Source: Schmidtea polychroa (taxonomy: Eukaryota). From it: a DNA stretch of 64,000 bases. Location: the NCBI GenBank assembly GCA_044892525.1, contig CM097887.1:77850397-77914396 (forward strand). Direction: 5' to 3'. This document shows positions 5,303 through 39,899 of this stretch, piece by piece. Under the pieces are notes generated by a model. That model was not told where the DNA came from and made no database searches. It saw nothing but the letters and a program-made list of their open reading frames with translations. Positions within the stretch are counted from its first letter, which is position 1; each line of letters starts with the position of its first letter. A program made the position numbers and the translations under genes.

Positions 5303-6170
5303 ATGAATTTTGAAGAATTTGAAGAGAAATTCATTACAGACTTAGGAAGAAGTTATTAGTTTTCTAATGATAAGAGATTTAATTAAAATAAGAAAAATGT
5401 TCTGATTGCAATGAATATATGGTTTTGAGACATTCATTACAGTTGATGGATTTTGTTGGTGCTGTTCAAATTCAAAATGTATTGCATATCAGAAAAGAAA
5501 ATCTATCCGTATAGGCAGTTACTCTTTTGGTATTAAAAGTAATTTTAAAACTATTTTAAAAATTTTAATTAGGTATATTACTGAACAACAAAATTTTTCA
5601 ATTAGCCAGTATATGAATTGTGATATTTCTGTTGTTAGTAGAGTAGTTAACAAAATAATTGACTTGTTACTTTTACAAAATTTTGCAAATGACAAATTTG
5701 GAGGCTTTTGTTCAGGTGGGCGAAACCATGCTCAATTACAAATGTAAGAGCCACGGGTGTCGTTCAACTGAAATTAAAACAGATGCCCTAGTTATTGTTG
5801 AAAGCAATGATAAAATCAGCTGAGCATTTGCTAAAATAACTCATAATAAAGAGGCCACAACAATATTACCAATTATTTGTGGAAATGTTTTATCAGGCAC
5901 AACAATTTATACGGATGAACATAAAAGCTATTCTTCTTTAGCAAGAAAAGGATTCATTCATAATACTGTTTGTCATAAATATAAATTTGTGAATAAAAAT
6001 AATGGAGCATATATTAAATTCGTTGAATCTTTCAATAATAACATTACATATGAAATTAAAAAGAGAAAAGGAAATATTACCAATAAAAGACAGATTTTCA
6101 AATGAAATTTGCTGGAAGTTTAACAATAAAGTTGATAGGTTCGAAAAAAATTTAGAATTAATTAAATGTT
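5303..6170 (+). mobile_element. Merlin (IS1016/IS1595-like) transposase pseudogene
   Basis: Motifs across frames: VQV(G)ETMLNYKCKSH, TDALVIVE, TILPIICGNVLSGTTIYTDEHKSY, TVCHKYKFV, VESFNN, EIKKRKG. Many stops and frameshifts. Confidence 0.85.
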
Positions 6171-16146: not shown

Positions 16147-18003
16147 ATGTCAAAAGCCTGGAAATACTTTGTCAAAGAAAACAAGGACGAAGCAAAATGC
16201 AAGAACTGCTTCAAAAAAATTAACAAGAAAGGTGGATCCACCAAAGGCCTCTTAACTCATCTTAGAACCATTCACCAAATTGACTTGAAAACGAACGTAG
16301 GCACACATTCTCAACGCGAGGTTTCGGAGGAGCCCGACTGCAAGAAGCGAAAACTATCAGTAATCACTGAATATTTTTCAGTTTCCAAGCCGTCCCTTGA
16401 TAAAATTCTAGCACACATGAAGCTAAAGACGGACTCCCATTTAAAGTTTTCATAACCTCGAAGGATATTCGGGCCGGACTAGCAGCAAGAGGATTGGACG
16501 TTCCCCTATCGGCTGTGATGATTAGACAGAAGGTAATGGACTACGCTTCGAAAATTGAACTGCAAATAAATGAGGATTTGCATCGACGATGTCAGCAAGG
16601 TGAAAAATTCTCTCTTACAGTAGATGAATGGACTGGTGTCAACAACAAGCGATATGCAAACATCAATGTTCACATGTCGGACAGAACAGTCCATCATCTA
16701 GGGCTCACTCGTATCAAAGGATCGATGACTGCTGAAATGGTTGTTCAAAGAGCATCTGAATTTGGTCTGGACATTAAAACAGATGTTATCTGCTGTACAA
16801 CTGATGCTGCTTCAGTCATGGCAAAATTTGGAAAGTTGATGAACTGCGAACACTAGCTTTGTTATGCCCATAGAGTCCATTTAGCAGTTTGCGATGTTCT
16901 ATACCTCAAAAAAACATCATTCGTCTCGGCACCAGAACTAGAGCAGAGTGAAAGTAGCCAGTCTAATGACGACTGGAATTCTACCGATGACGTTGAAGAA
17001 GCCGGTTTTGATGTGTGCAGTGACGTTGAAGTCACCAATGAATTTGATATTGGCTCTTTAAATTCTGTCATAAAAAAGTACGTAACATAGTAGAAGTCCA
17101 GTGAAGAATGATTTGTTGCAAAGATTTGCCAAAGAAGAACTTGGGAAAGAGCTATGCCTTGTTTTGGACGTCAAAAAAAGATGGAATTCCCTAATTGCAA
17201 TGCTGGAGAGATTTCTAGAGATTAAAGAGCCGGTGAGAAAGACGTTGGCCTGCTTAGGCCTGGAGATTCAACTTACAAACGATGAAATTCGAACGGTGCA
17301 GGAAATCACGACTGCCCTGAAACCACTGGAGCTGGTTGTGAAAACCCTTTCTGGACAGAGATGTACCTTAGTTATGGCCGAAACTGCTGTGAAGTTTGCA
17401 ATCGAAGAGCTTCAATCGCAAAACAGTACCCCGGGGTTCCAACTTGAATTGAGTTTGAAGGAACGCATGAAGGAGAGACATAGTTTGCTTTCCTCTGCAG
17501 CTATATGCCTTTCCAATGGTGGCAATATGGATTCTGTTAGCGAAGTCAACATGATGAAAGTAACATTGCTCAACTTGGCGCAAAGACTTAATGTCACAGT
17601 AGTTAGAGCTGAAACCGATTTTTTGCCACCTATAGTGCCTCTGGATTCGCCACCATTAACAATCCAAAACAGCATGGTAGAACGTCTGCGCATTGCTTTG
17701 GAAAAGAGCACAGATTACCATGTTGTTCATCAAAAGATGTCATCAAACAGTGCGAATCTTATGAATTTAACAATTCAAAGGGAGCTCGAGTTACTTAGAA
17801 CTGTTGGCCAACGTGGAAAAGTTCTCGAAATTCTTCACAAAGCATTGATGAGTGTTCCTCCCAACAGTGTAGAGGCCGAGAGAGCGTTTTCTGCTGGAGG
17901 TTCATTCCTCACAAAAATCAAATCACGCCTCGGAGATGATACATTATCAAAACTGTGTTTATTGAAGACTTATTTTAGATACTATAGAATTTCTAAGGAA
18001 TAA
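16147..18003 (+). mobile_element. hAT transposase pseudogene (Ac/ZBED1/ZBED4-like, with BED finger)
   Basis: AWKYF...AKCKNC...GSTKGLLTHLRTIH (BED); FSLTVDEWT; CCTTDAASVM; CEH*LCYAHRVHLAV; LDVKKRWNS; SVPPNSVEAERAFSAGG...SRLGD. Three disablements. TIRs not located. Confidence 0.92.
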
Positions 18004-18154
18004 TATAAAAATTATAATTAAAAAATCAATAACAGAATAATGAATTTTGGAATGGAGTTTAAGCTAAACAAAATGCAGAAATCCGATAAATTACTTGCGA
18101 ATAAACTTTTAACAGGTGAATAAATATTGTTTTATTATTTTATCTAAATTAAGC

Positions 18155-18793
18155 ATTACATCAATCTCTCGAAGAATGCGCTCTCATTGAACACGATCTA
18201 TCTAATACGCGGTTCCTAAAAAAATTACAGAAAATCCAATAAAAAGGCTTGGGTAACTGCTGAATTATTTTAAGAATGGTTTCACAAGTGTTTCGTCCCA
18301 GAGGTCCAGATTCACCTTGAAAAAAAGGCATGCCATTTAAAGTTTTGATAACACTCGACAATAATTGAACCATGCACAATTACTGCTTGCTGGAAAAATA
18401 TATGAAGTGAATGCGCTATAGATTTTCAAGGATTTCCAACTTCTGAAAATGATATTGAAAATATTGTTGCAATTAGCTATTAGGTTGATGGTGATGGTTT
18501 TGAAGATCTCCACCAAGAAGAAATTGAAGAAAAATTTAGGAGGAATGCGGAGACACTTACGAATGAAGAGTTGGTTTAACTTGTTGGTTCAGTTCCTGGT
18601 TCCAAAGATGACGATGAAGAAAATGACATAGTTAATGATTGGGATTTAAATAAATTAGGTGAATTGTTTCTTATGGTGAAACAAATAATTTCATTGTGGA
18701 AAATGATCCTTGAAAAGAACGAAGCCTCAATATTAAAAGAAAAGTTGAAAACGATTTTTTACCCTATCAAGAACTATTTAGCGAGATGATAAG
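18155..18793 (+). mobile_element. pogo/Tigger (TIGD1-like) transposase fragment, left of the Polinton insertion
   Basis: NKKAWVTAELF*EWFHKCFVPEV...KVLITLDNN; DGDGFEDLHQEEIEE...ETLTNEEL; ends ...QELFSEMIR at the TSD. Confidence 0.8.
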
Positions 18794-18899
18794 AGTAGAT
18801 GGATTGGGCACCGCTGGCACAGGGCACCGCTAGCACAGTACCCCCCTCCCCCCGTCGGTAAGATTTTCAAAAATATTCTAAGTCTAAAAGTACATTTTT

Positions 18900-19550
18900 T
18901 TTTCAAGGTCAAATTTAAACAAAGACATATGACTCATCAAGGTCATTGAAACAAAGACCATGAGTCATCCTATGACTCATCAAATTTTTCAAGGTCATTT
19001 AAACAAAGACCATGACTCATCCGATGACTCATCAAGGTCATTTTCAAGGTCATATGACTCATAATATGACTCATCAAGGTCCAAAAAATTTTCTCTGGGC
19101 CATTTAAACAAAGACCATGACTCATCAAGGTCATTTTCAAGGTTATATGACTCATAGTATGACTCATATTACCTTGAAAAATTTTTTCAAGGTCATATGA
19201 CTCATCCTATGACTCATCACGGTCATCGAAACAAAGGCCATGATTCATAGTATGACTCATATGACCTTGAAAATTTTTTTCAAGGTCATATGACTCATCC
19301 TATGACTCACCAAGGTCATTTTCAAGGTCATATGACTCATAGTATGACTCATTTGACCCTGAAAAATTTTTTCGAGGTCATATGACTCATCCTATGCCTC
19401 ATCAAGGTCATTCTCAAGGTCATATGACTCATCCGATGACTCATCAAAATTTTCCATGACTCATCAAGGTCATTTTCAAGGTCACATGACTCATCCAAGG
19501 TCATTCCCAAGGTCATATGAGTCATCGCGATGACTCATCAAGGTCATATT
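18900..19550. repeat. Subterminal array of ATGA(C/G)TCAT and TCAAGGTCA motifs (left arm)
   Basis: By manual count, ~23 ATGASTCAT and ~15 TCAAGGTCA in ~650 bp. Confidence 0.9.
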
Positions 19551-19702
19551 ATTATTTTTAAAAAATATTATTATTTTTATTATTATTTTTAAAAATATTA
19601 TTATTTTATTTTTAATTTTTTCAAAGTTCCCGCCAACGAAAATTAATAATCGATAGCTCATTTTAAAGCTCAATCCAAGACCTTTCGAATGAGCCATATA
19701 TC

Positions 19703-19756
<54 letters not shown>

Positions 19757-20299
19757 GTATTAATCTATATACACCGAGTCTATGTACTCTGAGTCTATCC
19801 GACAAAATATTTTGTCCCCCTATGGGTAATGCTCACAAGGGTACTGGTCACGCTCAACAAATCAACAAAACATACATTTATTTAAACAATAAAATAATGT
19901 AAAATTAACAAAGGTAAACTAAATATTGATGTACTACTATTCGCAGCAATATTGTTTGAAAACAAACGGCAATACAAAAGTACTCATAGATGACTCATTT
20001 ATTTTTTGAAGAAAGACAATGACGCACCCATGGGATATATTATTTATTACTATCAATAGTATTAATATTATTATTATTAATATTATTATTATTATTATTA
20101 TTATTATCATCAAGTTTTAATTACCAAGGTAATTTAAACAAAGACCATGACTCAGTCGCTGAATCATCAAGGTCGTTCTATTTTTAGTAACAAAGACATC
20201 TATTTTTAGTAACATTTTGAATATATTTTTAGTAACATTTTTGATCCGATCATTGATCCGATGACTCGCCAAGGTCATTCTATTTTTAGTAACAAAGAC

Positions 20300-21730
20300 A
20301 TCTATTTATGTTCCAGCGGTTTATTTTTGTTTTAATTATCGAATACGTAATAATTTAATTTTTTTTAAATTGTTAATTATATAATAATATTTTTATTTTT
20401 TGTTTTAATTATCGAATACGTAATAATTTAATTTTGTTTAAATCGTTGATTATATAATAATATTTTTATTTTTTGTTTTAATTATCGAATACGTAATAAT
20501 TTAATTTTGTTTAAATCGTTGATTATGTAATAATAACATGTTTTGTTTTAATTATCGATTACTCAATAATTTAATTTTGTTTAAATCGTTGATTATGAAA
20601 TATTTTTGGATTTAATTGTCGATTACGTAATAATTTAATTTATCATTATTATTGGGAAAGATATTACCGCTCGCGCGGAAAATGTTATTTTCAAAATTAG
20701 TATTTTCGAAGTTTTAATCAATATTATTATTATTATTATTATTATTATTAGTATTAATCTATATAGTCCGAGTTTATCCGACAAAATATTGTGTCCCCCT
20801 ATGTGTATTTGTAGAAAGGGTACTGGTCACATTCAACATGTCGCAAGGGTATTAATATTATTATTATTATTATTATTATAACATTAATATAACTTCATTA
20901 TTTTCAAGGTCATATTATTATTTTTCAAAATATTATTATTTTCAAGGTCATATTATTATTTTTCAAAATATTATTATTTTCAAGGTCATATTATTATTTT
21001 TCAAAATATTATTATATTTTTCAAGGTCATATTATTATTTTTCAAAATATTATTATATTTTTCAAGATCATATTATTATTTTTCAAAATATTATTATATT
21101 TTTCAAGATCATATTATTATTTTTCAAAATATTATTATTTTCAAGGTCATATTATTATTTTTCAAAATATTATTATTTTCAAGGTCATATTATTATTTTT
21201 CAAAATATTATTATATTTTTCAAGGTCATATTATTATTTTTCAAAATATTATTATTTTCAAGGTCATATTATTATTTTCAAGGTCATATTATTATTTTTC
21301 AAAATATTATTATTTCAAGGTCATATTATTATTTTATTTTAGTTTTGTTTAAATCGTTGATTATATGATAATATTTTTATTTTGGTTTTAATTATCGATT
21401 ACTTAATAATTTTTTATTTTTTTTTAATTATCGATTACTTAATAATTTAATATTGTTTAAATCGTTAATTATATAATAATATTTTTTTGTTTTAATTATC
21501 AATTATGTAATAATTTAATTTTGTTTAAATTGTTGATTGTATGATAATATTTTTATTTTTGTTTTAATTATCGATTACTTAATACCTTAATTTTGTTTAA
21601 ATCGTTGATTATGCAATAATAATTTTTGTTTAAATTATCAATTATGTAATAATTTAATTTTGTTTAAATCGTTGATTATATTATTTTTTTTGGTTTAATT
21701 ATCGATTACGCAATAATTTAATTTATCATT
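20300..21730. repeat. Minisatellite blocks in the left arm: ~73-bp unit (20300-20640, 21340-21730) and ~38-41-bp TCAAGGTCA-containing unit (20900-21330); mirrored at ~32770-34200
   Basis: GAATACG recurs at 20341, 20414 and 20487 (period 73). TCAAGGTCA recurs at 20942, 20980, 21021 and onward. Confidence 0.9.
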
Positions 21731-22272
21731 ATTATTGGGAAAGATATTAATGCCCGCGCGGAAGATGTTATTTTCAAAATTATTATTTNNNNNNNNNNNN
21801 NNNNNNNNNNNNNNNNNNNNNNNNNNNNNNNNNNNNNNNNNNNNNNNNNNNNNNNNNNNNNNNNNNNNNNNNNNNNNNNNNNNNNNNNNNNNNNNNNNNN
21901 NNNNNNNNNNNNNNNNNNNNNNNNNNGAACATTTTCATCAAATATTTTTCAAAGTATTATTTTCAAAGAATTATTTTCAAAGAATTATTATTATTATTTT
22001 TATTATTATTTGCAAAGTTCTAATTATTATTTTAATTTAGAAGTTTCATTATTATTATTTACTTAAATATTCATAAAACTTAATTTCTACGTCAATTACA
22101 TGATTTTCAACATTTTCATCATTTGCATGATTATTTTAATAATTTTCTACATTTTCAATATTTTCACGATTTTCAACATTTTCATGATTATTTCAGGAAC
22201 TTTTCATCGAATATTTTTCAAAGTATTATTTTCAAAGATTCATTTTCAAATTATTTTCAAAGTTTTTATCAA

Positions 22273-22327
<55 letters not shown>

Positions 22328-22804
22328 GTATAAAATGATGATTGCTTGGTAGCAGCATTTATTATTTAAAACAATAAAATGATAATTTAAGCCTTTTGCT
22401 GCAAATAATGTATTTAATGAAAGAATTTTCGACTATACGATAGTCCTTGTCAATCTATTATTATTATTATTATTATTATTGGTAAAGAAAAATCTAAAAT
22501 ATGGTTTACACGCACAACCCATCAACCATTATTATTATTATTATCAATATTAAAAACATAAAATATTTTTACACACACACACATGCACAATCCATTAAAC
22601 ATTATTATTATTAACGCAAATATTAGTGAAAAACCTAAAATATTTTTTACACGACCCATTAAACTTTATTATTATTATTATTATTATTGCAAATATTAGT
22701 CAAAAACATAAAATATTTTTACACACACACAACCCATTAACAATTATTATCAATATTAGTGAAAACCTAAAATATTTTCTACACACATATACAACCCTTT
22801 GAAC

Positions 22805-22843
<39 letters not shown>

Positions 22844-25800
22844 ATTAGTCAAAAACTTAAAATAATTTTTACACACTAAGTTATGGGGTAGAGAATTATT
22901 ATATGTTTGCAGTATTCTGTGTTTGCCTTTACAGGAAATTGTCAATAAGGAGTGATAATTTTATACATACATTCTATATACACATACCTTTTTAAAATGG
23001 ATGTATATACTCCTAGTCTATCCGACAAGATATTCTGTCCCCCTATGGGTATTACCAGCAAGGGTACTGGTCACATTCAACATGTCGCAAGGGTAAATTA
23101 ATTAAGGTTAGTAAATAAAACCTATCACACATACTATTTTTAATAATTATTTAAACTATAAAAATCAAGACAAGAGAGGACAAGGCAAAGTTTATGCATT
23201 TAGTATTGCCAGGTCTAATGAGCAGTGACCAAATATCTGTGCCTGAAAGACACGGTGGATATTTGTTCGCGTCCACAAGGGTCGTCTGTGCATCCCCCAA
23301 GTGGGGTCAAAAGAACCTGGGCATTATAGCTTTCCGTACGGAACATTACGCCTAGCATGGGTAGTCAACTACCAGCACATTCGAAACGTATAATTTCAAA
23401 ATACATGCGTCATTGGCACTATAACCAAATTAATTAATGTTTTCACTAACAACAATATATATTTACAGAGGCCTCCCACTAGTTGGATTACAACCGCCTA
23501 CCACGACGATCAGCTTGTAAATATATATTAATTAAGGGATAAAGAGGACCCACCCAACCCTTTTATATTTAATTTACAAATTTTTCTCGCTCTTCTGCTG
23601 GTAATCTATCTCAAAATTATCATCTCCATCGGGCCATTTGAAATACATCTTGCAAATTGGACGTATTTCTTAGTTTCTGATGCGGCGTCAACTATCATTG
23701 CTAAAATTTATATTGATTTAAAAGCAATTAACTTACATTATCTAACATTTTATCGTCACAGGCTTGATAAATTAGTCAACTGTTATTTGTGGTATACTTT
23801 TTCCATGTCATTTCCCACCATAAAACACAGATACCTAAATATAATATATATATTTTAAAGAATTAATTCATGTCTTACATTAATAATAATATTCTTCAGG
23901 TATGACGAGTACTTTACTTAATTGCTAAAACATCGATTTTTCCCATTTTTTTTGACATTCGTTGAAAGTTTACATAATTTAAGTCTGATAAGTAAACATT
24001 CATGTTGAAGGACACCCACAATCAGCTAATTCATTTAAGAAATCCGGAACTATAACTCCTTTAGTGTTTCACCATTTTGTCTGGTCATCTTCCCCATAAT
24101 CCAATAATTCATGTTTTAATAAGAAATCTCTAAATCCAGAACATAAGTCTTTTAGTGTTTCACTATTTTTTCTGGTTTATCTTCTTCATAATTATATAAT
24201 TCATTTATATAATTATATAATTCATTATATAATAATTAAAATATTGTAGTAAATTCTTTATATACTTACTTTATGGATACTAAAACGAAAGAAATAAAGT
24301 TATATGAAAAGTTTATTTAAATAATTTAAATTTAGTTATTTAAAAATATTTAAACAATTTAGTTATTTAAGCATATTTAAACATTAATATTATTATATAG
24401 TATAATTTTATATAATATTTAATATTATAATTTTATGTATTCTAAATTTATTAATAAATACAGTATAATTTTATATAATATTATAATTTTATGTACACTT
24501 ATATATCCTTCATTTAATTTTTTAAATTCAAAAATTTATAATGAAGATTCTTTGAATTAAAAAGTATTCTGTTAGTATTTCCAGGCAGAAAACAACGAAT
24601 TCAATAATTAAATCTTAATTTTCATGTTGTTAGGGTTGTGGCCAGAAGTTAATCGCCATCTAATCGTTTGTTCTCAATTTCGATCATTTTTGTTCAAAAC
24701 ATTCAGGTGAGTTGTTATCTGGAAAGTTTCTTTTAGCTCAGTTTTGTTAAAACACTCACGGTATTTTTGAGGGACGTGACACTGGAAATAAATTAACAAT
24801 GGGTGGTCATCCATACATGTTGTTGGTCTGAGCTGTCGATTTACTTTAGAAATAGGTATATTAAAAACATTTAAGTTATCATTCAGTAAAATAATATAGT
24901 ATTTTTTAGTTAATTTATAAATAACAGTATTTTGATATATCAATAAAGACCATATACTTCGAGTTCATCCGACAAAATATTCTGTCCCCCTATGGGTATT
25001 ACCAGCAAGGGTACTGGTCACATTCAACATGTCGCAAGGGTATAATAATCATTTAGAAATTCTTAGGTAATTTAGTGAGATGATCAGAAATTCGTGAATA
25101 TTTTAAATGTAACTTTACACTTATGTCGAGCGACTAATTTATTGGTTAACCTTTTAGACATTTAAAGCAAAAGGTAATTTATTCATCTAATGTTCGTTAC
25201 AATAGTTATTAATATGAGAAAAACATGGTCATTATTCATTGATAATTTTAAATTCTTTATCATTTGGAGTAAATTTGTTCGAGGCAAAAATATTTAAAGG
25301 AGTCATAATAGAAATATGGTTATCATTTAACCAAATAAGGTGCTTATTAGTTAAAAATACATGTTCATATAGGGTTATATTTCTTTTCTAATTTAATTAG
25401 ATGATCATTAGACGTAGTATATCTTTGCGAGAAATTTAAGATGTTTGAGTAACCAAAACATGGATATTTTGTGCGATAAATTTATGAATATTGGTTAATT
25501 TTGTTATTTTTAGTCATTTAAAATAATATTTAGCAAAGGTAATTTAGCAAAATATCATTTATCCATCCGATAACAATATTCCTTCAATAGATTAACTGAT
25601 ATTTAACCGATTTAATTTCTAGAAATCTAATTAAAATCATAAATTTCCTTCACTGATATCCTCACAATGAATAAAATAACTTCTTAAATAAACTAATTTA
25701 AAGAAATAACCTTTGATATCATTTATCTCTAAAGATTTCAAATATTTCATTGTCAAAACCAAGTAAATAGATTATTAACCCTAAACGACTTAATAAAACA

Positions 25801-28800
25801 GTGGATAATTAATAAAAACTTGTTCTAAAACATAAATCTAAATTACTGTGCAATAACATTCATCACGACCTAATAAACCTCTAAGACGATATAAGTTCAC
25901 TGGAATTATTATTAATTCATAGCTAAATACTGACTATTTCCTTTGAAAATTTGATATTTTACCAATAAGAACATTGTCGATTTAAATAGAGATTTAATTG
26001 TTAAAAACATTCTTCCATTGAAATAATTTAGTAGCTAAATTCAAAGAGTTCACTAAAAGATCAAAATTCATTAAAATAAATATTTAATCACATGTATCAT
26101 CAAATACCTAACTAGAGATGATAATATTTCATTGATTGATCATAATTCTTCATCGATTCAACTAATTATAACCATTATAACATGATATATCTTTCAAACT
26201 AAATTTCGGTATATTTTACAATAATTTTCAAGTAAATTTCAAATATATCATCATCGTGAAAACATTATCTGGTTTCAACTTTAGATTTTCAATATTTTAA
26301 AGTTCATCAATGTGTAAATATTCTTAGAAAAATATATGAAAAAAATTATATAGTCAAATTCAATATCATTACAAAGTCATCATCGTCAAATTTATCCTAT
26401 CACTTGATTATTAACATTAAAAATTAATTTTTATTTAAAATTTAAAAACAAGTCAATAAAATATAGCAAATTATCAAGAAATTAATTAAATTTATCTTAG
26501 AATTAACACTAAACCTTAAATTTTTAAATATTCTTTCAATTAACATGAAATTCACAAAAAATGTTAGTAAAATCCCGCTAACTCTAAAAAATTACCAATG
26601 AATTTAATGCCAAATAATAACCAAAAATTTGCCTAAATAAAATCATTAAAACACAACAGTACCTTTACGACCAGTACCCTTACGACCAATACCCTTACAA
26701 GCAGTACCCATAGAGGGAGAAAATATGTTGTCGGATAAACTCAGAGTATATATAATAAAACGAATTAACAATAACTCTATCAAATTGAATCAGTCAAATT
26801 ATCACAAATTTGATAAAAAATCTTATTCTAAAATGGTAAGCAGCGTAAAATCGAAAGATAATTTTAATAACACAGAGATAAAAATTAACAATATTATTCT
26901 CAGGTGGTAAGAACCATCATTATTCTATGATTAATTAATAATGAAATTCAAAAAAGTGAAAATAAGTGTTCAAATTATTCATTAATGGAAAGTAAATGTA
27001 AATATAGCGAGAAGTGGCATGTATAAGATTGAAATATATTAATTGAATTTATTTAAAATTATTTCATGAAATTCATAAAAATTTATAAAAATGATCACTT
27101 TTATAAAAAATATTTAATAAAATTTTCAAAGAAATATTTGTTGAGAGGATTAGTGGAAAATCTTGGGGCTATAAGTGATGAGGATATATAAAATTATTTC
27201 TAATATATGAGTTACTAACGAATTAAAATATTTTAATAATGTGATAAAAATTTATTTTGATAAAGTATTTAATCCACAAATGAAAACATACATAACAATT
27301 GGTATTTGACTGAGCAATTATGATAAATTCATATTTTAAATTTTGATTAACTCCTTTAATATTGAATTAATAATTATTATATTTACTATTTTACATTAAA
27401 TATTTCAAAAACAAATATTCTAAAAGATAATTTAAGATACATTACTCTTTTCAAACAACATGATCTCTCAAAGTTAAGAAGGAAACAAAGTGTGTCAGAT
27501 CACATACCTAGCATTAACTTTACTTAAATATATGAAAACACCAAGTAAGCAATGATAATAGAGTGATAACAGACTCAAAAATAAAATATTCTTACCACCT
27601 GAGAATAATATTGTTAATTTTTATCTCTGTGTTATTAAAATTATCTTTCGATTTTACGCTGCTTACCATTTTAGAATAAGATTTTTTATCAAATTTGTGA
27701 TAATTTGACTGATTCAATTTGATAGAGTTATTGTTAATTCGTTTTATTATATATACTCTGAGTTTATCCGACAACATATTTTCTCCCTCTATGGGTACTG
27801 CTTGTAAGGGTATTGGTCGTAAGGGTACTGGTCGTAAAGGTACTGTTGTGTTTTAATGATTTTATTTAGGCAAATTTTTGGTTATTATTTGGCATTAAAT
27901 TCATTGGTAATTTTTTAGAGTTAGCGGGATTTTGCTAACATTTTTTGTGAATTTCATGTTAATTGAAAGAATATTTAAAAATTTAAGGTTTAGTGTTAAT
28001 TCTAAGATAAATTTAATTAATTTCTTGATAATTTGCTATATTTTATTGACTTGTTTTTAAATTTTAAATAAAAATTAATTTTTAATGTTAATAATCAAGT
28101 GATAGGATAAATTTGATGATGATGACTTTGTAATGATATTGAATTTGACTATATAATTTTTTTCATATATTTTTCTAAGAATATTTACACATTGATGAAC
28201 TTTAAAATATTGAAAATCTAAAGTTGAAACCAGGTAATGTTTTCACGATGATGATATATTTGAAATTTACTTGAAAATTATTGTAAAATATACCGAAATT
28301 TAGTTTGAAAGATATATCATGTTATAATGGTTATAATTAGTTGAATCGATGAAGAATTATGATCAATCAATGAAATATTATCATCTCTAGTTAGGTATTT
28401 GATGATACATGTGATTAAATATTTATTTTAATGAATTTTGATCTTTTAGTGAACTCTTTGAATTTAGCTACTAAATTATTTCAATGGAAGAATGTTTTTA
28501 ACAATTAAATCTCTATTTAAATCGACAATGTTCTTATTGGTAAAATATCAAATTTTCAAAGGAAATAGTCAGTATTTAGCTATGAATTAATAATAATTCC
28601 AGTGAACTTATATCGTCTTAGAGGTTTATTAGGTCGTGATGAATGTTATTGCACAGTAATTTAGATTTATGTTTTAGAACAAGTTTTTATTAATTATCCA
28701 CTGTTTTATTAAGTCGTTTAGGGTTAATAATCTATTTACTTGGTTTTGACAATGAAATATTTGAAATCTTTAGAGATAAATGATATCAAAGGTTATTTCT

Positions 28801-31659
28801 TTAAATTAGTTTATTTAAGAAGTTATTTTATTCATTGTGAGGATATCAGTGAAGGAAATTTATGATTTTAATTAGATTTCTAGAAATTAAATCGGTTAAA
28901 TATCAGTTAATCTATTGAAGGAATATTGTTATCGGATGGATAAATGATATTTTGCTAAATTACCTTTGCTAAATATTATTTTAAATGACTAAAAATAACA
29001 AAATTAACCAATATTCATAAATTTATCGCACAAAATATCCATGTTTTGGTTACTCAAACATCTTAAATTTCTCGCAAAGATATACTACGTCTAATGATCA
29101 TCTAATTAAATTAGAAAAGAAATATAACCCTATATGAACATGTATTTTTAACTAATAAGCACCTTATTTGGTTAAATGATAACCATATTTCTATTATGAC
29201 TCCTTTAAATATTTTTGCCTCGAACAAATTTACTCCAAATGATAAAGAATTTAAAATTATCAATGAATAATGACCATGTTTTTCTCATATTAATAACTAT
29301 TGTAACGAACATTAGATGAATAAATTACCTTTTGCTTTAAATGTCTAAAAGGTTAACCAATAAATTAGTCGCTCGACATAAGTGTAAAGTTACATTTAAA
29401 ATATTCACGAATTTCTGATCATCTCACTAAATTACCTAAGAATTTCTAAATGATTATTATACCCTTGCGACATGTTGAATGTGACCAGTACCCTTGCTGG
29501 TAATACCCATAGGGGGACAGAATATTTTGTCGGATGAACTCGAAGTATATGGTCTTTATTGATATATCAAAATACTGTTATTTATAAATTAACTAAAAAA
29601 TACTATATTATTTTACTGAATGATAACTTAAATGTTTTTAATATACCTATTTCTAAAGTAAATCGACAGCTCAGACCAACAACATGTATGGATGACCACC
29701 CATTGTTAATTTATTTCCAGTGTCACGTCCCTCAAAAATACCGTGAGTGTTTTAACAAAACTGAGCTAAAAGAAACTTTCCAGATAACAACTCACCTGAA
29801 TGTTTTGAACAAAAATGATCGAAATTGAGAACAAACGATTAGATGGCGATTAACTTCTGGCCACAACCCTAACAACATGAAAATTAAGATTTAATTATTG
29901 AATTCGTTGTTTTCTGCCTGGAAATACTAACAGAATACTTTTTAATTCAAAGAATCTTCATTATAAATTTTTGAATTTAAAAAATTAAATGAAGGATATA
30001 TAAGTGTACATAAAATTATAATATTATATAAAATTATACTGTATTTATTAATAAATTTAGAATACATAAAATTATAATATTATAATATTATATAAAATTA
30101 TACTATATAATAATATTAATGTTTAAATATGCTTAAATAACTAAATTGTTTAAATATTTTTAAATAACTAAATTTAAATTATTTAAATAAACTTTTCATA
30201 TAACTTTATTTCTTTTGTTTTAGTATCCATAAAGTAAGTATATAAAGAATTTACTACAATATTTTAATTATTATATAATGAATTATATAATTATATAAAT
30301 GAATTATATAATTATGAAGAAGATAAACCAGAAAAAATAGTGAAACACTAAAAGACTTATGTTCTGGATTTAGAGATTTCTTATTAAAACATGAATTATT
30401 GGATTATGGGGAAGATGACCAGACAAAATGGTGAAACACTAAAGGAGTTATAGTTCCGGATTTCTTAAATGAATTAGCTGATTGTGGGTGTCCTTCAACA
30501 TGAATGTTTACTTATCAGACTTAAATTATGTAAACTTTCAACGAATGTCAAAAAAAATGGGAAAAATCGATGTTTTAGCAATTAAGTAAAGTACTCGTCA
30601 TACCTGAAGAATATTATTATTAATGTAAGACATGAATTAATTCTTTAAAATATATATATTATATTTAGGTATCTGTGTTTTATGGTGGGAAATGACATGG
30701 AAAAAGTATACCACAAATAACAGTTGACTAATTTATCAAGCCTGTGACGATAAAATGTTAGATAATGTAAGTTAATTGCTTTTAAATCAATATAAATTTT
30801 AGCAATGATAGTTGACGCCGCATCAGAAACTAAGAAATACGTCCAATTTGCAAGATGTATTTCAAATGGCCCGATGGAGATGATAATTTTGAGATAGATT
30901 ACCAGCAGAAGAGCGAGAAAAATTTGTAAATTAAATATAAAAGGGTTGGGTGGGTCCTCTTTATCCCTTAATTAATATATATTTACAAGCTGATCGTCGT
31001 GGTAGGCGGTTGTAATCCAACTAGTGGGAGGCCTCTGTAAATATATATTGTTGTTAGTGAAAACATTAATTAATTTGGTTATAGTGCCAATGACGCATGT
31101 ATTTTGAAATTATACGTTTCGAATGTGCTGGTAGTTGACTACCCATGCTAGGCGTAATGTTCCGTACGGAAAGCTATAATGCCCAGGTTCTTTTGACCCC
31201 ACTTGGGGGATGCACAGACGACCCTTGTGGACGCGAACAAATATCCACCGTGTCTTTCAGGCACAGATATTTGGTCACTGCTCATTAGACCTGGCAATAC
31301 TAAATGCATAAACTTTGCCTTGTCCTCTCTTGTCTTGATTTTTATAGTTTAAATAATTATTAAAAATAGTATGTGTGATAGGTTTTATTTACTAACCTTA
31401 ATTAATTTACCCTTGCGACATGTTGAATGTGACCAGTACCCTTGCTGGTAATACCCATAGGGGGACAGAATATCTTGTCGGATAGACTAGGAGTATATAC
31501 ATCCATTTTAAAAAGGTATGTGTATATAGAATGTATGTATAAAATTATCACTCCTTATTGACAATTTCCTGTAAAGGCAAACACAGAATACTGCAAACAT
31601 ATAATAATTCTCTACCCCATAACTTAGTGTGTAAAAATTATTTTAAGTTTTTGACTAAT

Positions 31660-31701
<42 letters not shown>

Positions 31702-32178
31702 GTTCAAAGGGTTGTATATGTGTGTAGAAAATATTTTAGGTTTTCACTAATATTGATAATAATTGTTAATGGGTTGTGTGTGTGTAAAAATATTTTATGT
31801 TTTTGACTAATATTTGCAATAATAATAATAATAATAATAAAGTTTAATGGGTCGTGTAAAAAATATTTTAGGTTTTTCACTAATATTTGCGTTAATAATA
31901 ATAATGTTTAATGGATTGTGCATGTGTGTGTGTGTAAAAATATTTTATGTTTTTAATATTGATAATAATAATAATAATGGTTGATGGGTTGTGCGTGTAA
32001 ACCATATTTTAGATTTTTCTTTACCAATAATAATAATAATAATAATAATAGATTGACAAGGACTATCGTATAGTCGAAAATTCTTTCATTAAATACATTA
32101 TTTGCAGCAAAAGGCTTAAATTATCATTTTATTGTTTTAAATAATAAATGCTGCTACCAAGCAATCATCATTTTATAC

Positions 32179-32230
<52 letters not shown>

Positions 32231-33767
32231 TTGATAAAAACTTTGAAAATAATTTGAAAATGAATCTTTGAAAATAATACTTTGAAAAATATTCGATGAA
32301 AAGTTCCTGAAATAATCATGAAAATGTTGAAAATCGTGAAAATATTGAAAATGTAGAAAATTATTAAAATAATCATGCAAATGATGAAAATGTTGAAAAT
32401 CATGTAATTGACGTAGAAATTAAGTTTTATGAATATTTAAGTAAATAATAATAATGAAACTTCTAAATTAAAATAATAATTAGAACTTTGCAAATAATAA
32501 TAAAAATAATAATAATAATTCTTTGAAAATAATTCTTTGAAAATAATACTTTGAAAAATATTTGATGAAAATGTTCNNNNNNNNNNNNNNNNNNNNNNNN
32601 NNNNNNNNNNNNNNNNNNNNNNNNNNNNNNNNNNNNNNNNNNNNNNNNNNNNNNNNNNNNNNNNNNNNNNNNNNNNNNNNNNNNNNNNNNNNNNNNNNNN
32701 NNNNNNNNNNNNNNNNNNNNNNNNNNNNNAAATAATAATTTTGAAAATAACATCTTCCGCGCGGGCATTAATATCTTTCCCAATAATAATGATAAATTAA
32801 ATTATTGCGTAATCGATAATTAAACCAAAAAAAATAATATAATCAACGATTTAAACAAAATTAAATTATTACATAATTGATAATTTAAACAAAAATTATT
32901 ATTGCATAATCAACGATTTAAACAAAATTAAGGTATTAAGTAATCGATAATTAAAACAAAAATAAAAATATTATCATACAATCAACAATTTAAACAAAAT
33001 TAAATTATTACATAATTGATAATTAAAACAAAAAAATATTATTATATAATTAACGATTTAAACAATATTAAATTATTAAGTAATCGATAATTAAAAAAAA
33101 ATAAAAAATTATTAAGTAATCGATAATTAAAACCAAAATAAAAATATTATCATATAATCAACGATTTAAACAAAACTAAAATAAAATAATAATATGACCT
33201 TGAAATAATAATATTTTGAAAAATAATAATATGACCTTGAAAATAATAATATGACCTTGAAAATAATAATATTTTGAAAAATAATAATATGACCTTGAAA
33301 AATATAATAATATTTTGAAAAATAATAATATGACCTTGAAAATAATAATATTTTGAAAAAAAATAATATGACCTTGAAAATAATAATATTTTGAAAAATA
33401 ATAATATGATCTTGAAAAATATAATAATATTTTGAAAAATAATAATATGATCTTGAAAAATATAATAATATTTTGAAAAATAATAATATGACCTTGAAAA
33501 ATATAATAATATTTTGAAAAATAATAATATGACCTTGAAAATAATAATATTTTGAAAAATAATAATATGACCTTGAAAATAATAATATTTTGAAAAATAA
33601 TAATATGACCTTGAAAATAATGAAGTTATATTAATGTTATAATAATAATAATAATAATAATATTAATACCCTTGCGACATGTTGAATGTGACCAGTACCC
33701 TTTCTACAAATACACATAGGGGGACACAATATTTTGTCGGATAAACTCGGACTATATAGATTAATAC

Positions 33768-33811
<44 letters not shown>

Positions 33812-35039
33812 TTGATTAAAACTTCGAAAATACTAATTTTGAAAATAACATTTTCCGCGCGAGCGGTAATATCTTTCCCAATAATAATGATAAATTAAAT
33901 TATTACGTAATCGACAATTAAATCCAAAAATATTTCATAATCAACGATTTAAACAAAATTAAATTATTGAGTAATCGATAATTAAAACAAAACATGTTAT
34001 TATTACATAATCAACGATTTAAACAAAATTAAATTATTACGTATTCGATAATTAAAACAAAAAATAAAAATATTATTATATAATCAACGATTTAAACAAA
34101 ATTAAATTATTACGTATTCGATAATTAAAACAAAAAATAAAAATATTATTATATAATTAACAATTTAAACAAAATTAAATTATTACGTATTCGATAATTA
34201 AAACAAAAATAAACCGCTGGAACAAAAATAGATGTCTTTGTTACTAAAAATAGAATGACCTTGGCGAGTCATCGGATCAATGATCGGATCAAAAATGTTA
34301 CTAAAAATATATTCAAAATGTTACTAAAAATAGATGTCTTTGTTACTAAAAATAGAACGACCTTGATGATTCAGCGACTGAGTCATGGTCTTTGTTTAAA
34401 TTACCTTGGTAATTAAAACTTGATGATAATAATAATAATAATAATAATATTAATAATAATAATATTAATACTATTGATAGTAATAAATAATATATCCCAT
34501 GGGTGCGTCATTGTCTTTCTTCAAAAAATAAATGAGTCATCTATGAGTACTTTTGTATTGCCGTTTGTTTTCAAACAATATTGCTGCGAATAGTAGTACA
34601 TCAATATTTAGTTTACCTTTGTTAATTTTACATTATTTTATTGTTTAAATAAATGTATGTTTTGTTGATTTGTTGAGCGTGACCAGTACCCTTGTGAGCA
34701 TTACCCATAGGGGGACAAAATATTTTGTCGGATAGACTCAGAGTATATAGACTNNNNNNNNNNNNNNNNNNNNNNNNNNNNNNNNNNNNNNNNNNNNNNN
34801 NNNNNNNNNNNNNNNNNNNNNNNNNNNNNNNNNNNNNNNNNNNNNNNNNNNNNNNNNNNNNNNNNNNNNNNNNNNNNNNNNNNNNNNNNNNNNNNNNNNN
34901 NTCGAAAGGTCTTGGATTGAGCTTTAAAATGAGCTATCAATTATTAATTTTCGTTGGCGGGAACTTTGAAAAAATTAAAAATAAAATAATAATATTTTTA
35001 AAAATAATAATAAAAATAATAATATTTTTTAAAAATAAT

Positions 35040-35585
35040 AATATGACCTTGATGAGTCATCGCGATGACTCATATGACCTTGGGAATGACCTTGGATGAG
35101 TCATGTGACCTTGAAAATGACCTTGATGAGTCATAGGATGACTCAGATGACCTTGAAAATGACCTTGAAAATTTTGATGAGTCATCGGGTGAGTCATATG
35201 ACCTTGAAAAAATTTTTCAAGGTCAAATGAGTCATACTATGAGTCATGGTCTTTGTTTCAATGACCTTGATGAGGCATAGGATGAGTCATATGACCTTGA
35301 AAAAATTTTCAAGGCCATATGAGTCATACTATGAGTCATATGACCTTGAAAATGACCTTGATGAGTCATGGTCTTTGTTTAAATGACCTTGAGAAAATTT
35401 TTTTGCCCTGGATGAGTCATATTATGAGTCATATGACCTTGAAAATGACCTTGATGAGTCATCGGATGAGTCATGGTCTTTGTTTAAATGACCTTGAAAA
35501 TTTGATGAGTCATAGGATGACTCATGGTCTTTGTTTCAATGACCTTGATGAGTCATATGTCTTTGTTTAAATTTGACCTTGAAAA
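35040..35585. repeat. Subterminal array of ATGA(C/G)TCAT and TGACCTTGA motifs (right arm)
   Basis: Mirror of 18900-19550 with a different unit order and count. Confidence 0.9.
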
Positions 35586-35701
35586 AAAATGTACTTTTAG
35601 ACTTAGAATATTTTTGAAAATCTTACCGACGGGGGGAGGGGGGGGGGGTACTGTGCTAGCGGTGCCCTGTGCCAGCGGTGCCCAATCCATCTACTGATAA
35701 G

Positions 35702-36665
35702 GCAAAAGAGTCAATAGCCAATAACAATGTATTTTTCTAAGAAGCAGCCTATCCAATCTGCTGTTTTGGAATTGCCTTCATCATTTTCAACTCCTTTAAC
35801 TTCCAAAGCAACTGCTGGGCCTCCGTCCCCAACTCAATCTGATCCTGATTATCATTCAATTATAATTTTTTTCTCGTAAAACTATATTTTTTTTATTTGG
35901 AAGAAACTTTTTTTGTTCAATGGAAAATGATGTGATAAGCAATTTACATATTAACTAGCTAGTCACTAAGATAACTTCATATAAATTACTTTAAGTACGT
36001 ATATTATATATTTTTTTTATTTGGAAACCTTTTTTTCAATAGTAGATGTGATAAATAATTTACTAATTAACTAGTCAATACAAATGTTTATAGAAATGAC
36101 TTTATTATTAAAGATATAAAAAAATACTGATTCTGTTTTATTCACCCTTTATATGTAGCCAATGAGTACGTACAGTAAATAATTTTATTATGTACACTAG
36201 AACATCGTTAAATTAAAATTGCTGCGTATAAACATAATTTTATTTTGTTAAATTCCTTTGTCTTTCATCTGTTTTAGAAAGCGGAAATAACCAATTAAAA
36301 TCTCGGCTTCGGATTACAATTCTTCAAATTGGATGGTGGAATTTATCATTTAATAGTTTTAGCGACATTTTATACTGTATTTTATATCGCATAAATACTC
36401 GTATAAATACTCGTTTTAAAAAGTCAAAATTTAAGTTAAGAGAGTGAATTTTTTTTATCTTTCGATTTCTTTTATTTAATATATTTATTTACTATAGGCT
36501 TCAAGTTAATATATTCTTAATATATTATAGCGCAAACGGTATTAAACAATGTTTTAGGCACTCGCAACTGACTTATTTTTTTCAGGTTGATTTAAGATAT
36601 ACGCGGTCTCGCCAATAACGTGGTGGGTCAGGAACGTAACCTCCGCGTTATAGGAGAGACTGCTG
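35702..36665 (+). mobile_element. pogo/Tigger 3' portion and right TIR, right of the Polinton insertion
   Basis: The reading frame resumes across the TSD (EMIR|QKSQ*PITMYFSKK). Tigger-type TIR ...CCGCGTTATAGGAGAGACTGCTG|TA ends at 36665. Confidence 0.75.
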
Positions 36666-37155
36666 TATTTGATAACGACAAACATGCATCCTAGTTGTCC
36701 CAGAATCCCAGTTTAAAGAGGACTGCTGGGTTCAACAGATTTTTTAAACATTACAATCTACAACATAGATAAAAATTACATGAATATTTCAACATAAATA
36801 TTGCATAATATAACACTGTAAAACTCATTTCAATTTTTAAACAAATTTCTGAAACATTAATATTAAAATTAGGGGTCTCGAAATTTTGATTTATATTGAC
36901 AAGAGCTCAAAAATTACTAGAACAATTTCGAAAAATTCAGATTGGTATGAAAAAATGTACTTAGAGAACAAACCTAAAACAATCTAGTCAACTTAAGAAT
37001 ATATTCTGGTCAGAAGAACAGCAACAGAAAAATATGGAATTACAATCAGGTTCAGAATTATTTGTTTGTTTTTAATTGTTGAAAAGATAAATGAATTCCT
37101 TATTTTGTGTTATAAAGGACATAAGTATTAATATAATTAATAAAATATGTAAATA

Positions 37156-38552
37156 CAGGGTTTTTCAATTGAAATCAGATTTTTTTCAAATGAAATCAGA
37201 ATATTTTCAAATGAAATCAGAATTTTTTCAAATGAAATCAGAATTTTTTTCAAATGAAATAAAATTCAAATATGTATATATAATATCCATAAAATATTAA
37301 TATTTTTCAAAATCAATGAACCATAAGACACCTCCAACAAAAAAATCACAATTGAGCAATGCTGCGAGAAAACCTATATGTATCAAATTTGATTCCGGCC
37401 AAAGCGTAAAAAAAATTGCTGCAGATCTCGTTATGAACTATAAAACTGTTTATAGTATTATTAGCATTTACAAGACAACAGGAAGGATTGATAAAATGGA
37501 AGATAGAGGGTGCAAGTCCAAAAAATTGAGCGAAGAGCATTTAGTTTTTCTAAAAGAAAAAATTTCCGATGATTGTTCTACTCCGTTGAGAGGTATGAAA
37601 AGAAGTTTGAGTGAGTCTATGAATGTTAACGTATCGTTGGCCACAATTCATAGGTCAATCAAAGACTTTAATTTCTCTTTTAAACGAGTAGGCTTAATTC
37701 CCGCTGCCCGCAAAACTGCGGAAGCTATTGAGCGCAGGTATGAGTATGCCAATGAATATTTGGCATTAAACTAGGACCATGTCTTTTTCCTTGATGAAAG
37801 CGGTTTCAATTGCTCGATGAGATTGGGATATGGACGAAGCGAAGTAGGGTCTCCTGCTCGCAAAGAAGTGAGAAGTATACGAAGTAAAAACTATTCAGTG
37901 TGCGCAGCAATCAGCAAAATGTCGATTTTGAATTTTGAAGTTGTAGAAGGTGGATACAATGCAGAGAAGTTTACAAATTTTGTCTCCCAATTTATAGGAA
38001 ATCTACGATCACAAGGAATATCGACAGGTACGATTATAATGGATAATTGTACAATAAATAAAAGTGTTGGCGTACGCGATTTGATCAACAATTCTGGATT
38101 TACGTTACGCTTTTACCACCTTATTCGCCGCAGTTAAATCCGATTGAAGAGTGTTTCTCGAAATGGAAATCAATTGTCAAATCGGCTAACGTTCTAAATG
38201 TAATCGAGTTGAAAAACGCTATTGAAATGGGACACAATTCGATAACCACGGAGGATTGTATCGGATTTTTCAACGACACGAGAAGGTTTGCATTAAAGGC
38301 GGTAAGAAGAGAAGAATTCTGATTAAAAGTTTTAACTACCAATTTTTACTCTATCATGATTTCATTTAAAGTGTATATAATATTTTATTACCCATAAAAA
38401 TTATGAATTCAATTTAAAACAGTTCTGATTTCTATTAAAGAAATTTTGATTTCATTTGAAAAAATTCTGATTTTATTTGAAAAAAATCTGATTTCATTTG
38501 AAAAAATTCTGATTTCATTTGAAAAAATTCTGAATTCATTTGAAAAACCCTG
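37156..38552 (+). mobile_element. Tc1/IS630-like DD34E element, full length, transposase (37316-~38325) with one stop and one frameshift
   Basis: TA|CAGGGTTTTTCAA ... TTGAAAAACCCTG|TA, with ~21-bp subterminal repeats (TTTTTCAAATGAAATCAGAA). FLDESGFN, IIMDNC and, after restoring one T, LPPYSPQLNPIEECFSKWK, giving 34 residues between D2 and E. Confidence 0.93.
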
Positions 38553-39899
38553 TATATACATATACACATCAAACATTAATTGCATTTTAAACATTCCCAT
38601 AACTAAAATAAACTTTTTTCAGAATTAAAACCCTTTTTAACGAAATCAATTATTTTTTGTATGGTAGAACTTTTTCAGAACCTTTTATGGATGAAAAGTG
38701 AATTATTTGTATGTTAATCTCATTGCATGACAAAACTACTAAATAATCACCCGAACTAATGAACTAATAATAATTTAATCAAGAATAAGGTGTGGCTAGC
38801 TTTATATTAACTTTTCAGCATTGACAAATCAAGTAATTTTTAATTAAAATAGAAAATTGTGTGTAGCAATTAATTACAATTAATTATATACAGATTTTAA
38901 TTTATTTTGATACCCTTGTTACGAAAATACACAATTTCAATGTTATTAAGGACATAAGTATAACTGATTAGTCTCAAATCATAAAAATCAAGGATACATG
39001 ACAACAATAAAATGGTTTTGGGGACATCTAAATACTTATCTGTAACAACATGAAAACACAGTCTAATTTAAGTTTGTAAAAAAATCTAAAGATACTATAT
39101 TTATTATATATTTATTGTATAATTATTAAAAATTGTAAACCACAAAAATATTATCATACATTTAATAACAATATTTACAGAATAAATAATTCAAAACTAA
39201 ACTCACCATATCCTCCATGATTTTTTTACAGTCGAAAAATTATTATAAATTAGATAATTTATCAATTTATTTTGATGATCATTTTTATTTTTGAACTAAA
39301 TCAAATTAAAATGGCTTCAAAAATATTTCTTTTATTGATGAGTTAAAACTTTCTCTTTTTTGATGTGAAATAAAACTTTATTAATTTTTGCAAAATAGTA
39401 GTAAAATGATATCATAATACTATTTTTGTTAATATAACCGAATGACATTAGATGAGAAAATTAAAACTAGAACACTTGTATATATTTAGTTTTCCACTAT
39501 TAAAAAGCAGTTTCGAAAATTTGTGATAACCAGAAAGAGGTGATCCATACTCTAAAACTAAAAAAAAAGAATTATATCGTAAAGGAAAGCAGGTCAAAGA
39601 TGATTAAGACAAAGGCGAATGATGTTATTGAGAGTATGTGTCTAATAAACTTTTGCTAAGTAAAGAGGCCTGATTCCTCGAATAACGACTAATAATCTTA
39701 CACACATATAAATGAAATATTGTACTATATGGAATTCGTGGTTATCTTTAAAATGGAACTATACAAGTGAAACTGTTAAATTCCGGACAATCATAAAGTT
39801 CATAGACCAAGTTCTTTTATTAAGGTCCTCGTACCTAGATCCGTCTTGCTTTAGCGACTTGTTGGGTCAAAAGTTAAAGGACATCTAAATCCTGGTGGA

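Follow-up and report, generated by a model that had tools for sequence, protein, structure and literature searches.

How can a 16.9-kb piece of DNA that carries no gene, and that is almost entirely one palindrome, come to be inserted into a genome as a unit? This question is raised by a locus in Schmidtea polychroa (assembly GCA_044892525.1, contig CM097887.1, positions 77,850,397 to 77,914,396 of the forward strand). The 64,000-nucleotide stretch that was analysed is called the window here, and positions are counted from its first letter. The element in question occupies 18794..35695 (16,902 bp including 439 unread nucleotides, N); it has AGTAG...CTACT ends, is 96% palindromic and is gene-less. 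An earlier note on this DNA had proposed a copy-back defective genome of a Polinton/Maverick element, a type that is called Maverick below. In this study, the structure and content of the element are described, and the possible origins of its palindrome are weighed. With about even confidence, we regard it as a non-autonomous element of the foldback type that bears an insertion signature like that of Mavericks and that would have become palindromic through one snap-back event before integration.

Structure of the element

The element is a discrete insertion, which was integrated as a single unit. Its sequence opens at 18794 with AGTAGATGG and closes at 35695 with CCATCTACT. Both tips are abutted by GATAAG (left copy, 18788..18793; right copy, 35696..35701), a perfect direct repeat of 6 bp that constitutes the target-site duplication (TSD). 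The complementarity of the palindrome ends exactly at the tips, and the flanks are direct continuations and not inverted copies of one another. Taken together, the direct 6-bp repeat, the palindrome ending at the tips and the non-inverted flanks indicate that a ready-made unit was inserted. The terminal 30-mer was found at two sites in the window, both of which are element tips, with 0 expected by chance. Each flank was also searched separately across the window for an empty paralogous site, and none was found.

Two other ways of arriving at such a structure were ruled out. An in-situ chromosomal inverted duplication that included flanking DNA is contradicted by the flanks, which are direct and not inverted. 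Two insertions in head-to-head arrangement are contradicted by the inner arm ends, which are not termini.

The arms were defined by an inverted-repeat search and by BLAST of one half of the element against the reverse complement of the other half. The left arm (18794..26913, + strand) measures 8,120 bp, and the right arm (27589..35695, − strand) measures 8,107 bp including assembly gaps 2 and 3. The 675-bp centre between them (26914..27588) is unique and has no partner sequence, and no microhomology was observed at either of its junctions with the arms.

The two arms were compared from the tips inward. The outer 287 bp differ by one substitution, by run lengths (one C run and two T runs) and by a 3-nt indel at the segment boundary. 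The array at ~19076-19450 follows, with ~22 substitutions and the indel of a ~100-bp unit. From ~19454 inward, the arms are near-identical again: the next 2.0 kb contains 4 substitutions and 2 microsatellite indels, and the inner 4.99 kb contains 4 substitutions (all transitions) and 3 indels of 1-3 nt. When the single 380-bp array stretch is excluded, 9 substitutions remain in ~7.3 kb. The tips are the same in both arms apart from homopolymer lengths, and an older, more diverged terminal repeat is absent there. The near-identity of the arms (~99.9%) points to a young palindrome.

Nearly all of the divergence between the arms thus lies in this 380-bp part of an array (19076-19450 versus 35126-35410), on both sides of which the arms are identical. 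Unit shuffling or misassembly is the simplest cause of an excess that is confined to a tandem array.

These values reproduce the structural description in the earlier note, namely AGTAG...CTACT ends with a perfect 6-bp TSD and a ~96% palindrome with arms of ~8120 and ~8107 bp around a 675-bp spacer. The mismatches that it gave as examples (26268/28234 and 26568/27934) are both present.

Repeat arrays and coding capacity

Tandem arrays account for ~4 kb, or about half, of each arm, and the other ~4 kb per arm and the centre are unique. Tandem Repeats Finder located the arrays over roughly 18.8-22.9 kb of the left arm and in its mirror, with periods of 16, 31/52/93, 73, 38, 34/67, 14/27 and ~70, together with TAT/TTA microsatellites. 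The terminal block (18794..18858, +; mirror 35629-35695, with the longer C/G run) is composed of AGTAG, two 16-bp direct repeats (GGGCACCGCTRGCACA) and a C-rich tract. The subterminal array (18900..19550, +; mirror 35040-35590) has periods of 31/52/93 and units from TCAAGGTCAT and ATGACTCAT, and it is the only stretch with a marked difference between the arms. The internal arrays (20320..21788, +; mirror 32730-34213) consist of a 73-bp unit repeated 4.6 times, a 38-bp unit repeated 11 times that contains TCAAGGTCAT, and a 34/67-bp unit repeated 11 times. Further short-period arrays and TAT/TTA microsatellites are found at 21946..22870 (+; mirror 31656-32572), followed by the non-repetitive arm core (22871..26913, +; mirror 27589-31640). 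The GC content of the element ranges from 12 to 39% in 300-bp windows, and that of the whole window is ~28.5%.

Two short motifs are reiterated in these arrays. TCAAGGTCAT is present in 47 copies inside the element and in 0 copies in the other 47 kb of the window; its copies belong to the subterminal array and to another array located 2.1 kb further in, nearly always in one orientation per arm. ATGACTCAT, which often abuts TCAAGGTCAT, has 43 copies inside the element and 1 in the other 47 kb. The motif-bearing arrays extend over 18900-19550 and 20897-21335, with mirrors at 35040-35590 and 33183-33621, and dozens of perfect copies are placed near both ends. One of the two motifs has the sequence of an extended nuclear-receptor half-site (TCAAGGTCA, FTZ-F1/SF-1/ERR type), and the other has that of the AP-1/GCN4 site (TGACTCA). 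Adenovirus origins likewise use host transcription-factor sites. A composite 19-mer of the array was also searched, and only single, non-arrayed matches at chance level were obtained.

The coding capacity of the element is very small. The longest start-to-stop open reading frame (ORF) without N encodes 104 aa of low complexity, and an ORF of 124 aa passes through a gap, which agrees with the previous statement that none exceeds ~125 aa. No Pfam family was found above noise in the longest ORFs of the element or in the 32 longest stop-free frames of the core and spacer. ORF and Pfam searches of the element revealed no trace of pPolB, integrase, ATPase, protease or capsid genes, and no Maverick gene, the integrase included, was detected anywhere in the window. 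Scans of the arms and spacer for tRNA genes and Rfam families identified no tRNA and no family, with sub-threshold microRNA-like hairpins in the arrays only.

A block of ~90 nt occurs three times per arm, each time beside TA (23005-23102, 24952-25049 and, inverted, 26657-26751, plus the mirrors). The last two copies are inverted relative to one another and lie 1.8 kb apart. Judged from their arrangement, these blocks may mark a nested, TA-flanked element with terminal inverted repeats (TIRs) inside each arm. The block is identical in both arms and hence predates the palindrome, so the molecule that was copied would already have held foreign DNA.

Assembly gaps

The window contains five runs of N, three of which lie inside the element and have estimated lengths of 138, 153 and 148 nt (439 N in total). 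Gap 1 (21789..21926) and gap 2 (32577..32729) are mirror images of one another, with inner edges at 5,325 and 5,326 nt from the centre. Gap 3 (34754..34901, estimated at 148 nt) faces 19689-19776 of the left arm, where 88 bp with a TTA microsatellite were read. The arms align up to both edges of gaps 1 and 2 (21788 with 32730, and 21927 with 32576); the order and orientation of the pieces are therefore consistent, and each arm has an unread segment of ~140-150 nt at the matching place. None of the three gaps is spanned by a gene or reading frame. The gaps were left unfilled, and the true length of the element may deviate by as much as a few hundred bp. Both ends and their flanks are located in contigs other than the central one (up to 21788, and from 34902 onward). 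Accordingly, the inverted ends, joined to unique flanks and to the TSD, are read within contigs, and the central palindrome hangs on one contig.

Surrounding window

The unit was inserted into a decayed, transposon-rich region. The left flank (18140..18793, +) is a decayed reading frame that resembles, by eye, the C-terminal part of a pogo/Tigger transposase and continues in 35696-35876. Several stops and one or more frameshifts interrupt it, and one reading frame runs on across the TSD. The insertion had previously been placed in a Tigger ORF. Continuation of the frame across the TSD was observed, as it would be with any simple insertion, but the frame is riddled with stops, and a Pfam search of its stop-free pieces gave no support for the Tigger label.

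A hAT-type transposase is encoded upstream by three ORFs (16147-18003) with a BED finger, DUF659 and the hAT dimerisation domain; its closest database relative is 65% identical and lies on a metagenome contig. A Tc1-like transposase is encoded by two ORFs (HTH and DDE_3) at 37091-38628. On either side of this pair are ~21-nt tandem arrays, inverted with respect to one another, which makes it another element with array-bearing ends. A piggyBac transposase fragment (10233-10577) and a GIY-YIG (Penelope-like) ORF (48386-49150) were also identified. An exon for a fatty-acyl-CoA reductase (54947-55747) encodes 266 aa without interruption, and its best named match, from a flatworm, is 43% identical, so that the protein collections seem to lack the host genome. 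Across the homology searches with this exon and with the hAT ORF, the best identities were 43%, 65% and 76%, the last over half the length. Exact look-ups of three proteins from the window in a contig index gave no record. The whole 64-kb window can be described as a transposon graveyard.

Discussion

Under the reading that we favour, ~8.8 kb of an already non-coding molecule would have been copied, after which the new strand would have turned back at 27588/26913 and run off at the terminus. One such inverted duplication would yield two identical ends before integration. Integration would then have been effected in trans by an enzyme with a 6-bp stagger in its cuts and with specificity for AG...CT ends, and the reiterated TCAAGGTCAT and ATGACTCAT are putative cis-acting protein-binding sites. 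A single run-off inverted duplication accounts both for arms that reach the very tips and for tips whose divergence does not exceed that of the interior. The arms are only ~0.1% diverged, which leaves no time for gene decay, and yet no gene relic was found; the copied 8.8 kb was thus presumably non-coding beforehand. The absence of microhomology at the turn-back point does not discriminate a viral-type polymerase from host repair synthesis, and one copy cannot decide whether the strand was turned back by a strand-displacing protein-primed polymerase or by such repair. A more specific version, in which a strand-displacing, protein-primed polymerase turned back on the displaced strand of a Maverick satellite that was gene-less beforehand and a helper integrase inserted the resulting genome-length palindrome, is unlikely.

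Related molecules are known from protein-primed linear replicons. The SYREC (symmetric recombinant) of adenovirus 12 is said to have a palindromic layout. It is helper-dependent (PMC2396429), and in phi29, subgenomic molecules from one genome end accumulate via template switching of the polymerase (PMC4974454, citing Murthy 1998). Defective genomes that are complementary over nearly the whole length are termed snap-back (PMC13506859), and this form, rather than the copy-back form named previously, corresponds to the element. The element resembles these defective genomes in that what would be one genome end is present in two inverted copies with identical ends or origins, in its presumed helper dependence, and in complementarity that starts from an asymmetric turn-back point and continues as far as the termini. 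It differs in that those molecules are extrachromosomal replication products of a known parent, whereas the present one is integrated between TSDs and resembles none of the genes of such a parent.

The terminal features suggest an affiliation with Mavericks. Vertebrate Mavericks have (AGT)2//(ACT)2 or (AG)3//(CT)3 ends, a 6-bp TSD and TIRs of 46-1,447 bp, and intact copies have a mean length of 16,862 ± 1,678 bp (PMC8097293). The element shares the 6-bp TSD, its 16.9 kb falls on the vertebrate mean, and it has AG...CT ends, in which AGTAGA matches 5/6 of (AGT)2, a motif that was described from vertebrates and may not be that of this host. By our own arithmetic, a match of at least 5/6 to either Maverick end motif is expected in ~1% of random hexamers. 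In contrast to Mavericks, the element lacks every defining gene, and its inverted repeat measures 8,120/8,107 bp. Non-autonomous DNA transposons are classed in Repbase by terminal and TSD features (PMC4455052). Among the described eukaryotic superfamilies, the Maverick integrase appears to fit the 6-bp stagger and the AG...CT ends best. IS3EU/GingerRoot, the other superfamily with a 6-bp TSD, has TA..TA or TG..CA ends (PMC10045372); it was rejected because its TSD length fits but the ends of the element do not. The Polinton affiliation put forward in the earlier note agrees with the TSD, the AG...CT ends and the length, and the lack of all the defining genes, the TIR length and the array-filled arms speak against it. 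Its argument from packaging size is weak, since 16.9 kb does fall on the vertebrate mean but is one length only and includes 439 estimated N. The polintons of butterflies provide a further comparison, as their ~2-kb TIRs likewise represent one end duplicated in inverted form over a distance well in excess of an ordinary TIR (bioRxiv 10.1101/2025.02.07.637071). Their duplicated part has hexon and adenain genes and the butterfly element stays coding, whereas here 8.1 kb is duplicated and all of it is non-coding.

The architecture is closer to that of foldback transposons. The families FB, Galileo and Tetris have long inverted arms built of arrays, with reiterated short motifs and a small middle (PMC4079207, PMC4168063). 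The element is likewise non-coding with very long, largely tandem-repeat inverted arms, and it shares the reiterated short motifs, the small unique middle and arms that differ in array content. It is distinguished by its AG...CT ends and by arms that are several times longer, with unique sequence in half of each.

Several points weigh against the favoured reading. Membership of the Mavericks is not established, as the assignment was made from five terminal bases and a 6-bp repeat in one copy. Arms full of tandem arrays are undescribed for Mavericks, and a TSD of 6 bp departs from the 7-10 bp of described foldback families (8-10 bp in Mutator-type families, 7 bp in Galileo/P-type families; PMC4079207). 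A 7-bp TSD is formally possible because a T precedes each GATAAG, but only with an inverted repeat that is unequal by one base. Comparison of the element with the rest of the window revealed no other copy, the terminal 22- and 25-mers had no match in viral and metagenome contigs, and blastn searches with the core (in phages) and with the tip (in plasmids) also returned no match. The contig at 21927-32576 is itself a palindrome with a unique centre, and it breaks at mirror-image points. One arm may have been used twice by the assembler, which would inflate the identity and weaken the argument for youth. A single copy of the element is available.

Four other origins were weighed. It is somewhat unlikely that the element belongs to a cut-and-paste superfamily unrelated to Mavericks, as a foldback element whose TIRs grew by array expansion and by inter-TIR template switching in repair synthesis, and whose AG...CT ends are coincidental. 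Such an origin would agree with an architecture identical to the FB/Galileo/Tetris type, with reiterated short motifs spread across the 2.5 kb next to the end (PMC4079207, PMC4168063), and with local hairpin-forming units in the arrays, although these are weak microRNA-like matches only. It is disfavoured by the TSD, which is not of the 7-10 bp that the described families make (PMC4079207), by 8-kb arms that far exceed the 1-2 kb usual in these families, and by the rarity (~1% of random hexamers, as calculated above) of a match of at least 5/6 to a Maverick end motif. The origin advanced in the earlier note, a defective genome of an autonomous Maverick, is decidedly unlikely. In this scenario, protein-primed synthesis by the polymerase of the element itself changed template after ~8.8 kb and continued on the displaced strand back to the end, and the genome-length product was packaged and integrated by a helper. 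A palindrome that extends to the exact tips is what run-off on a displaced strand should give, the ends and TSD match the Maverick signature (PMC8097293), the length equals the vertebrate Maverick mean, and AGTAG holds the terminal reiteration needed for sliding-back or jumping-back initiation (PMC4974454). The template-switch subgenomic molecules of phi29 (PMC4974454) and the gene-containing 2-kb TIRs of butterfly polintons (bioRxiv 10.1101/2025.02.07.637071) are precedents, and together with adenovirus 12 they render the proposed mechanism plausible in kind. It is the autonomous parent that the sequence argues against. Had the template been switched ~8.8 kb into such a Maverick, several genes should have been duplicated, as happened in the butterfly polintons, and no relic of a Maverick gene was found in the 8.8 kb despite a difference of only ~0.1% between the arms. 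Furthermore, no Maverick gene lies in the 64-kb window, arrays fill half of each arm, the copied end seems to hold a nested foreign element, the turn-back point has no microhomology, and the matching length includes 439 estimated N.

The remaining two explanations concern the palindrome itself. It is quite unlikely that all or part of the central palindrome was created by the assembly; the long inverted ends would still be real (at least ~3 kb, joined to unique flank within contigs), and the interior would be different or single-armed. This explanation gains from the self-contained palindromic contig at 21927-32576, from gaps 1 and 2, which interrupt both arms at the same sequence positions, and from the many arm differences that are homopolymer or microsatellite lengths. 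However, mirror-image breaks are also expected if both arms share one unassemblable array. With 4 substitutions and 3 indels between them, the inner arms were not simply copied, and fold-back chimeric reads would not give a non-palindromic centre of 675 bp that meets the arms at two distinct junctions. Conversion between arms can preserve the identity of large palindromes, and an ordinary long-TIR element might have been inserted and its interior made palindromic afterwards in place, by such gene conversion or by replication template switching. High identity would then be obtained without youth. We regard this course as highly improbable, given that the tips are no older in divergence than the interior, that the event would have to be bounded exactly by pre-existing TIRs, and that a remnant of a second, different interior is absent.

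Conclusions

If the structure is real and the ends are of Maverick type, the locus holds a foldback-style, gene-less derivative in a superfamily whose non-autonomous forms have hardly been described. The run-off palindrome would then, if the reading is true, provide indirect sequence evidence on the way in which these elements are copied extrachromosomally, and a Polinton-type snap-back would be a natural fossil of an extrachromosomal replication step that has only been postulated so far. If the element instead belongs to an unknown cut-and-paste family, the foldback architecture would be extended to a group with 6-bp TSDs and to arms of 8 kb. A perfect hairpin of 16.9 kb endangers replication, complicates assembly and might give rise to double-stranded RNA; if transcribed, the 8-kb hairpin could feed small-RNA silencing of its own family.

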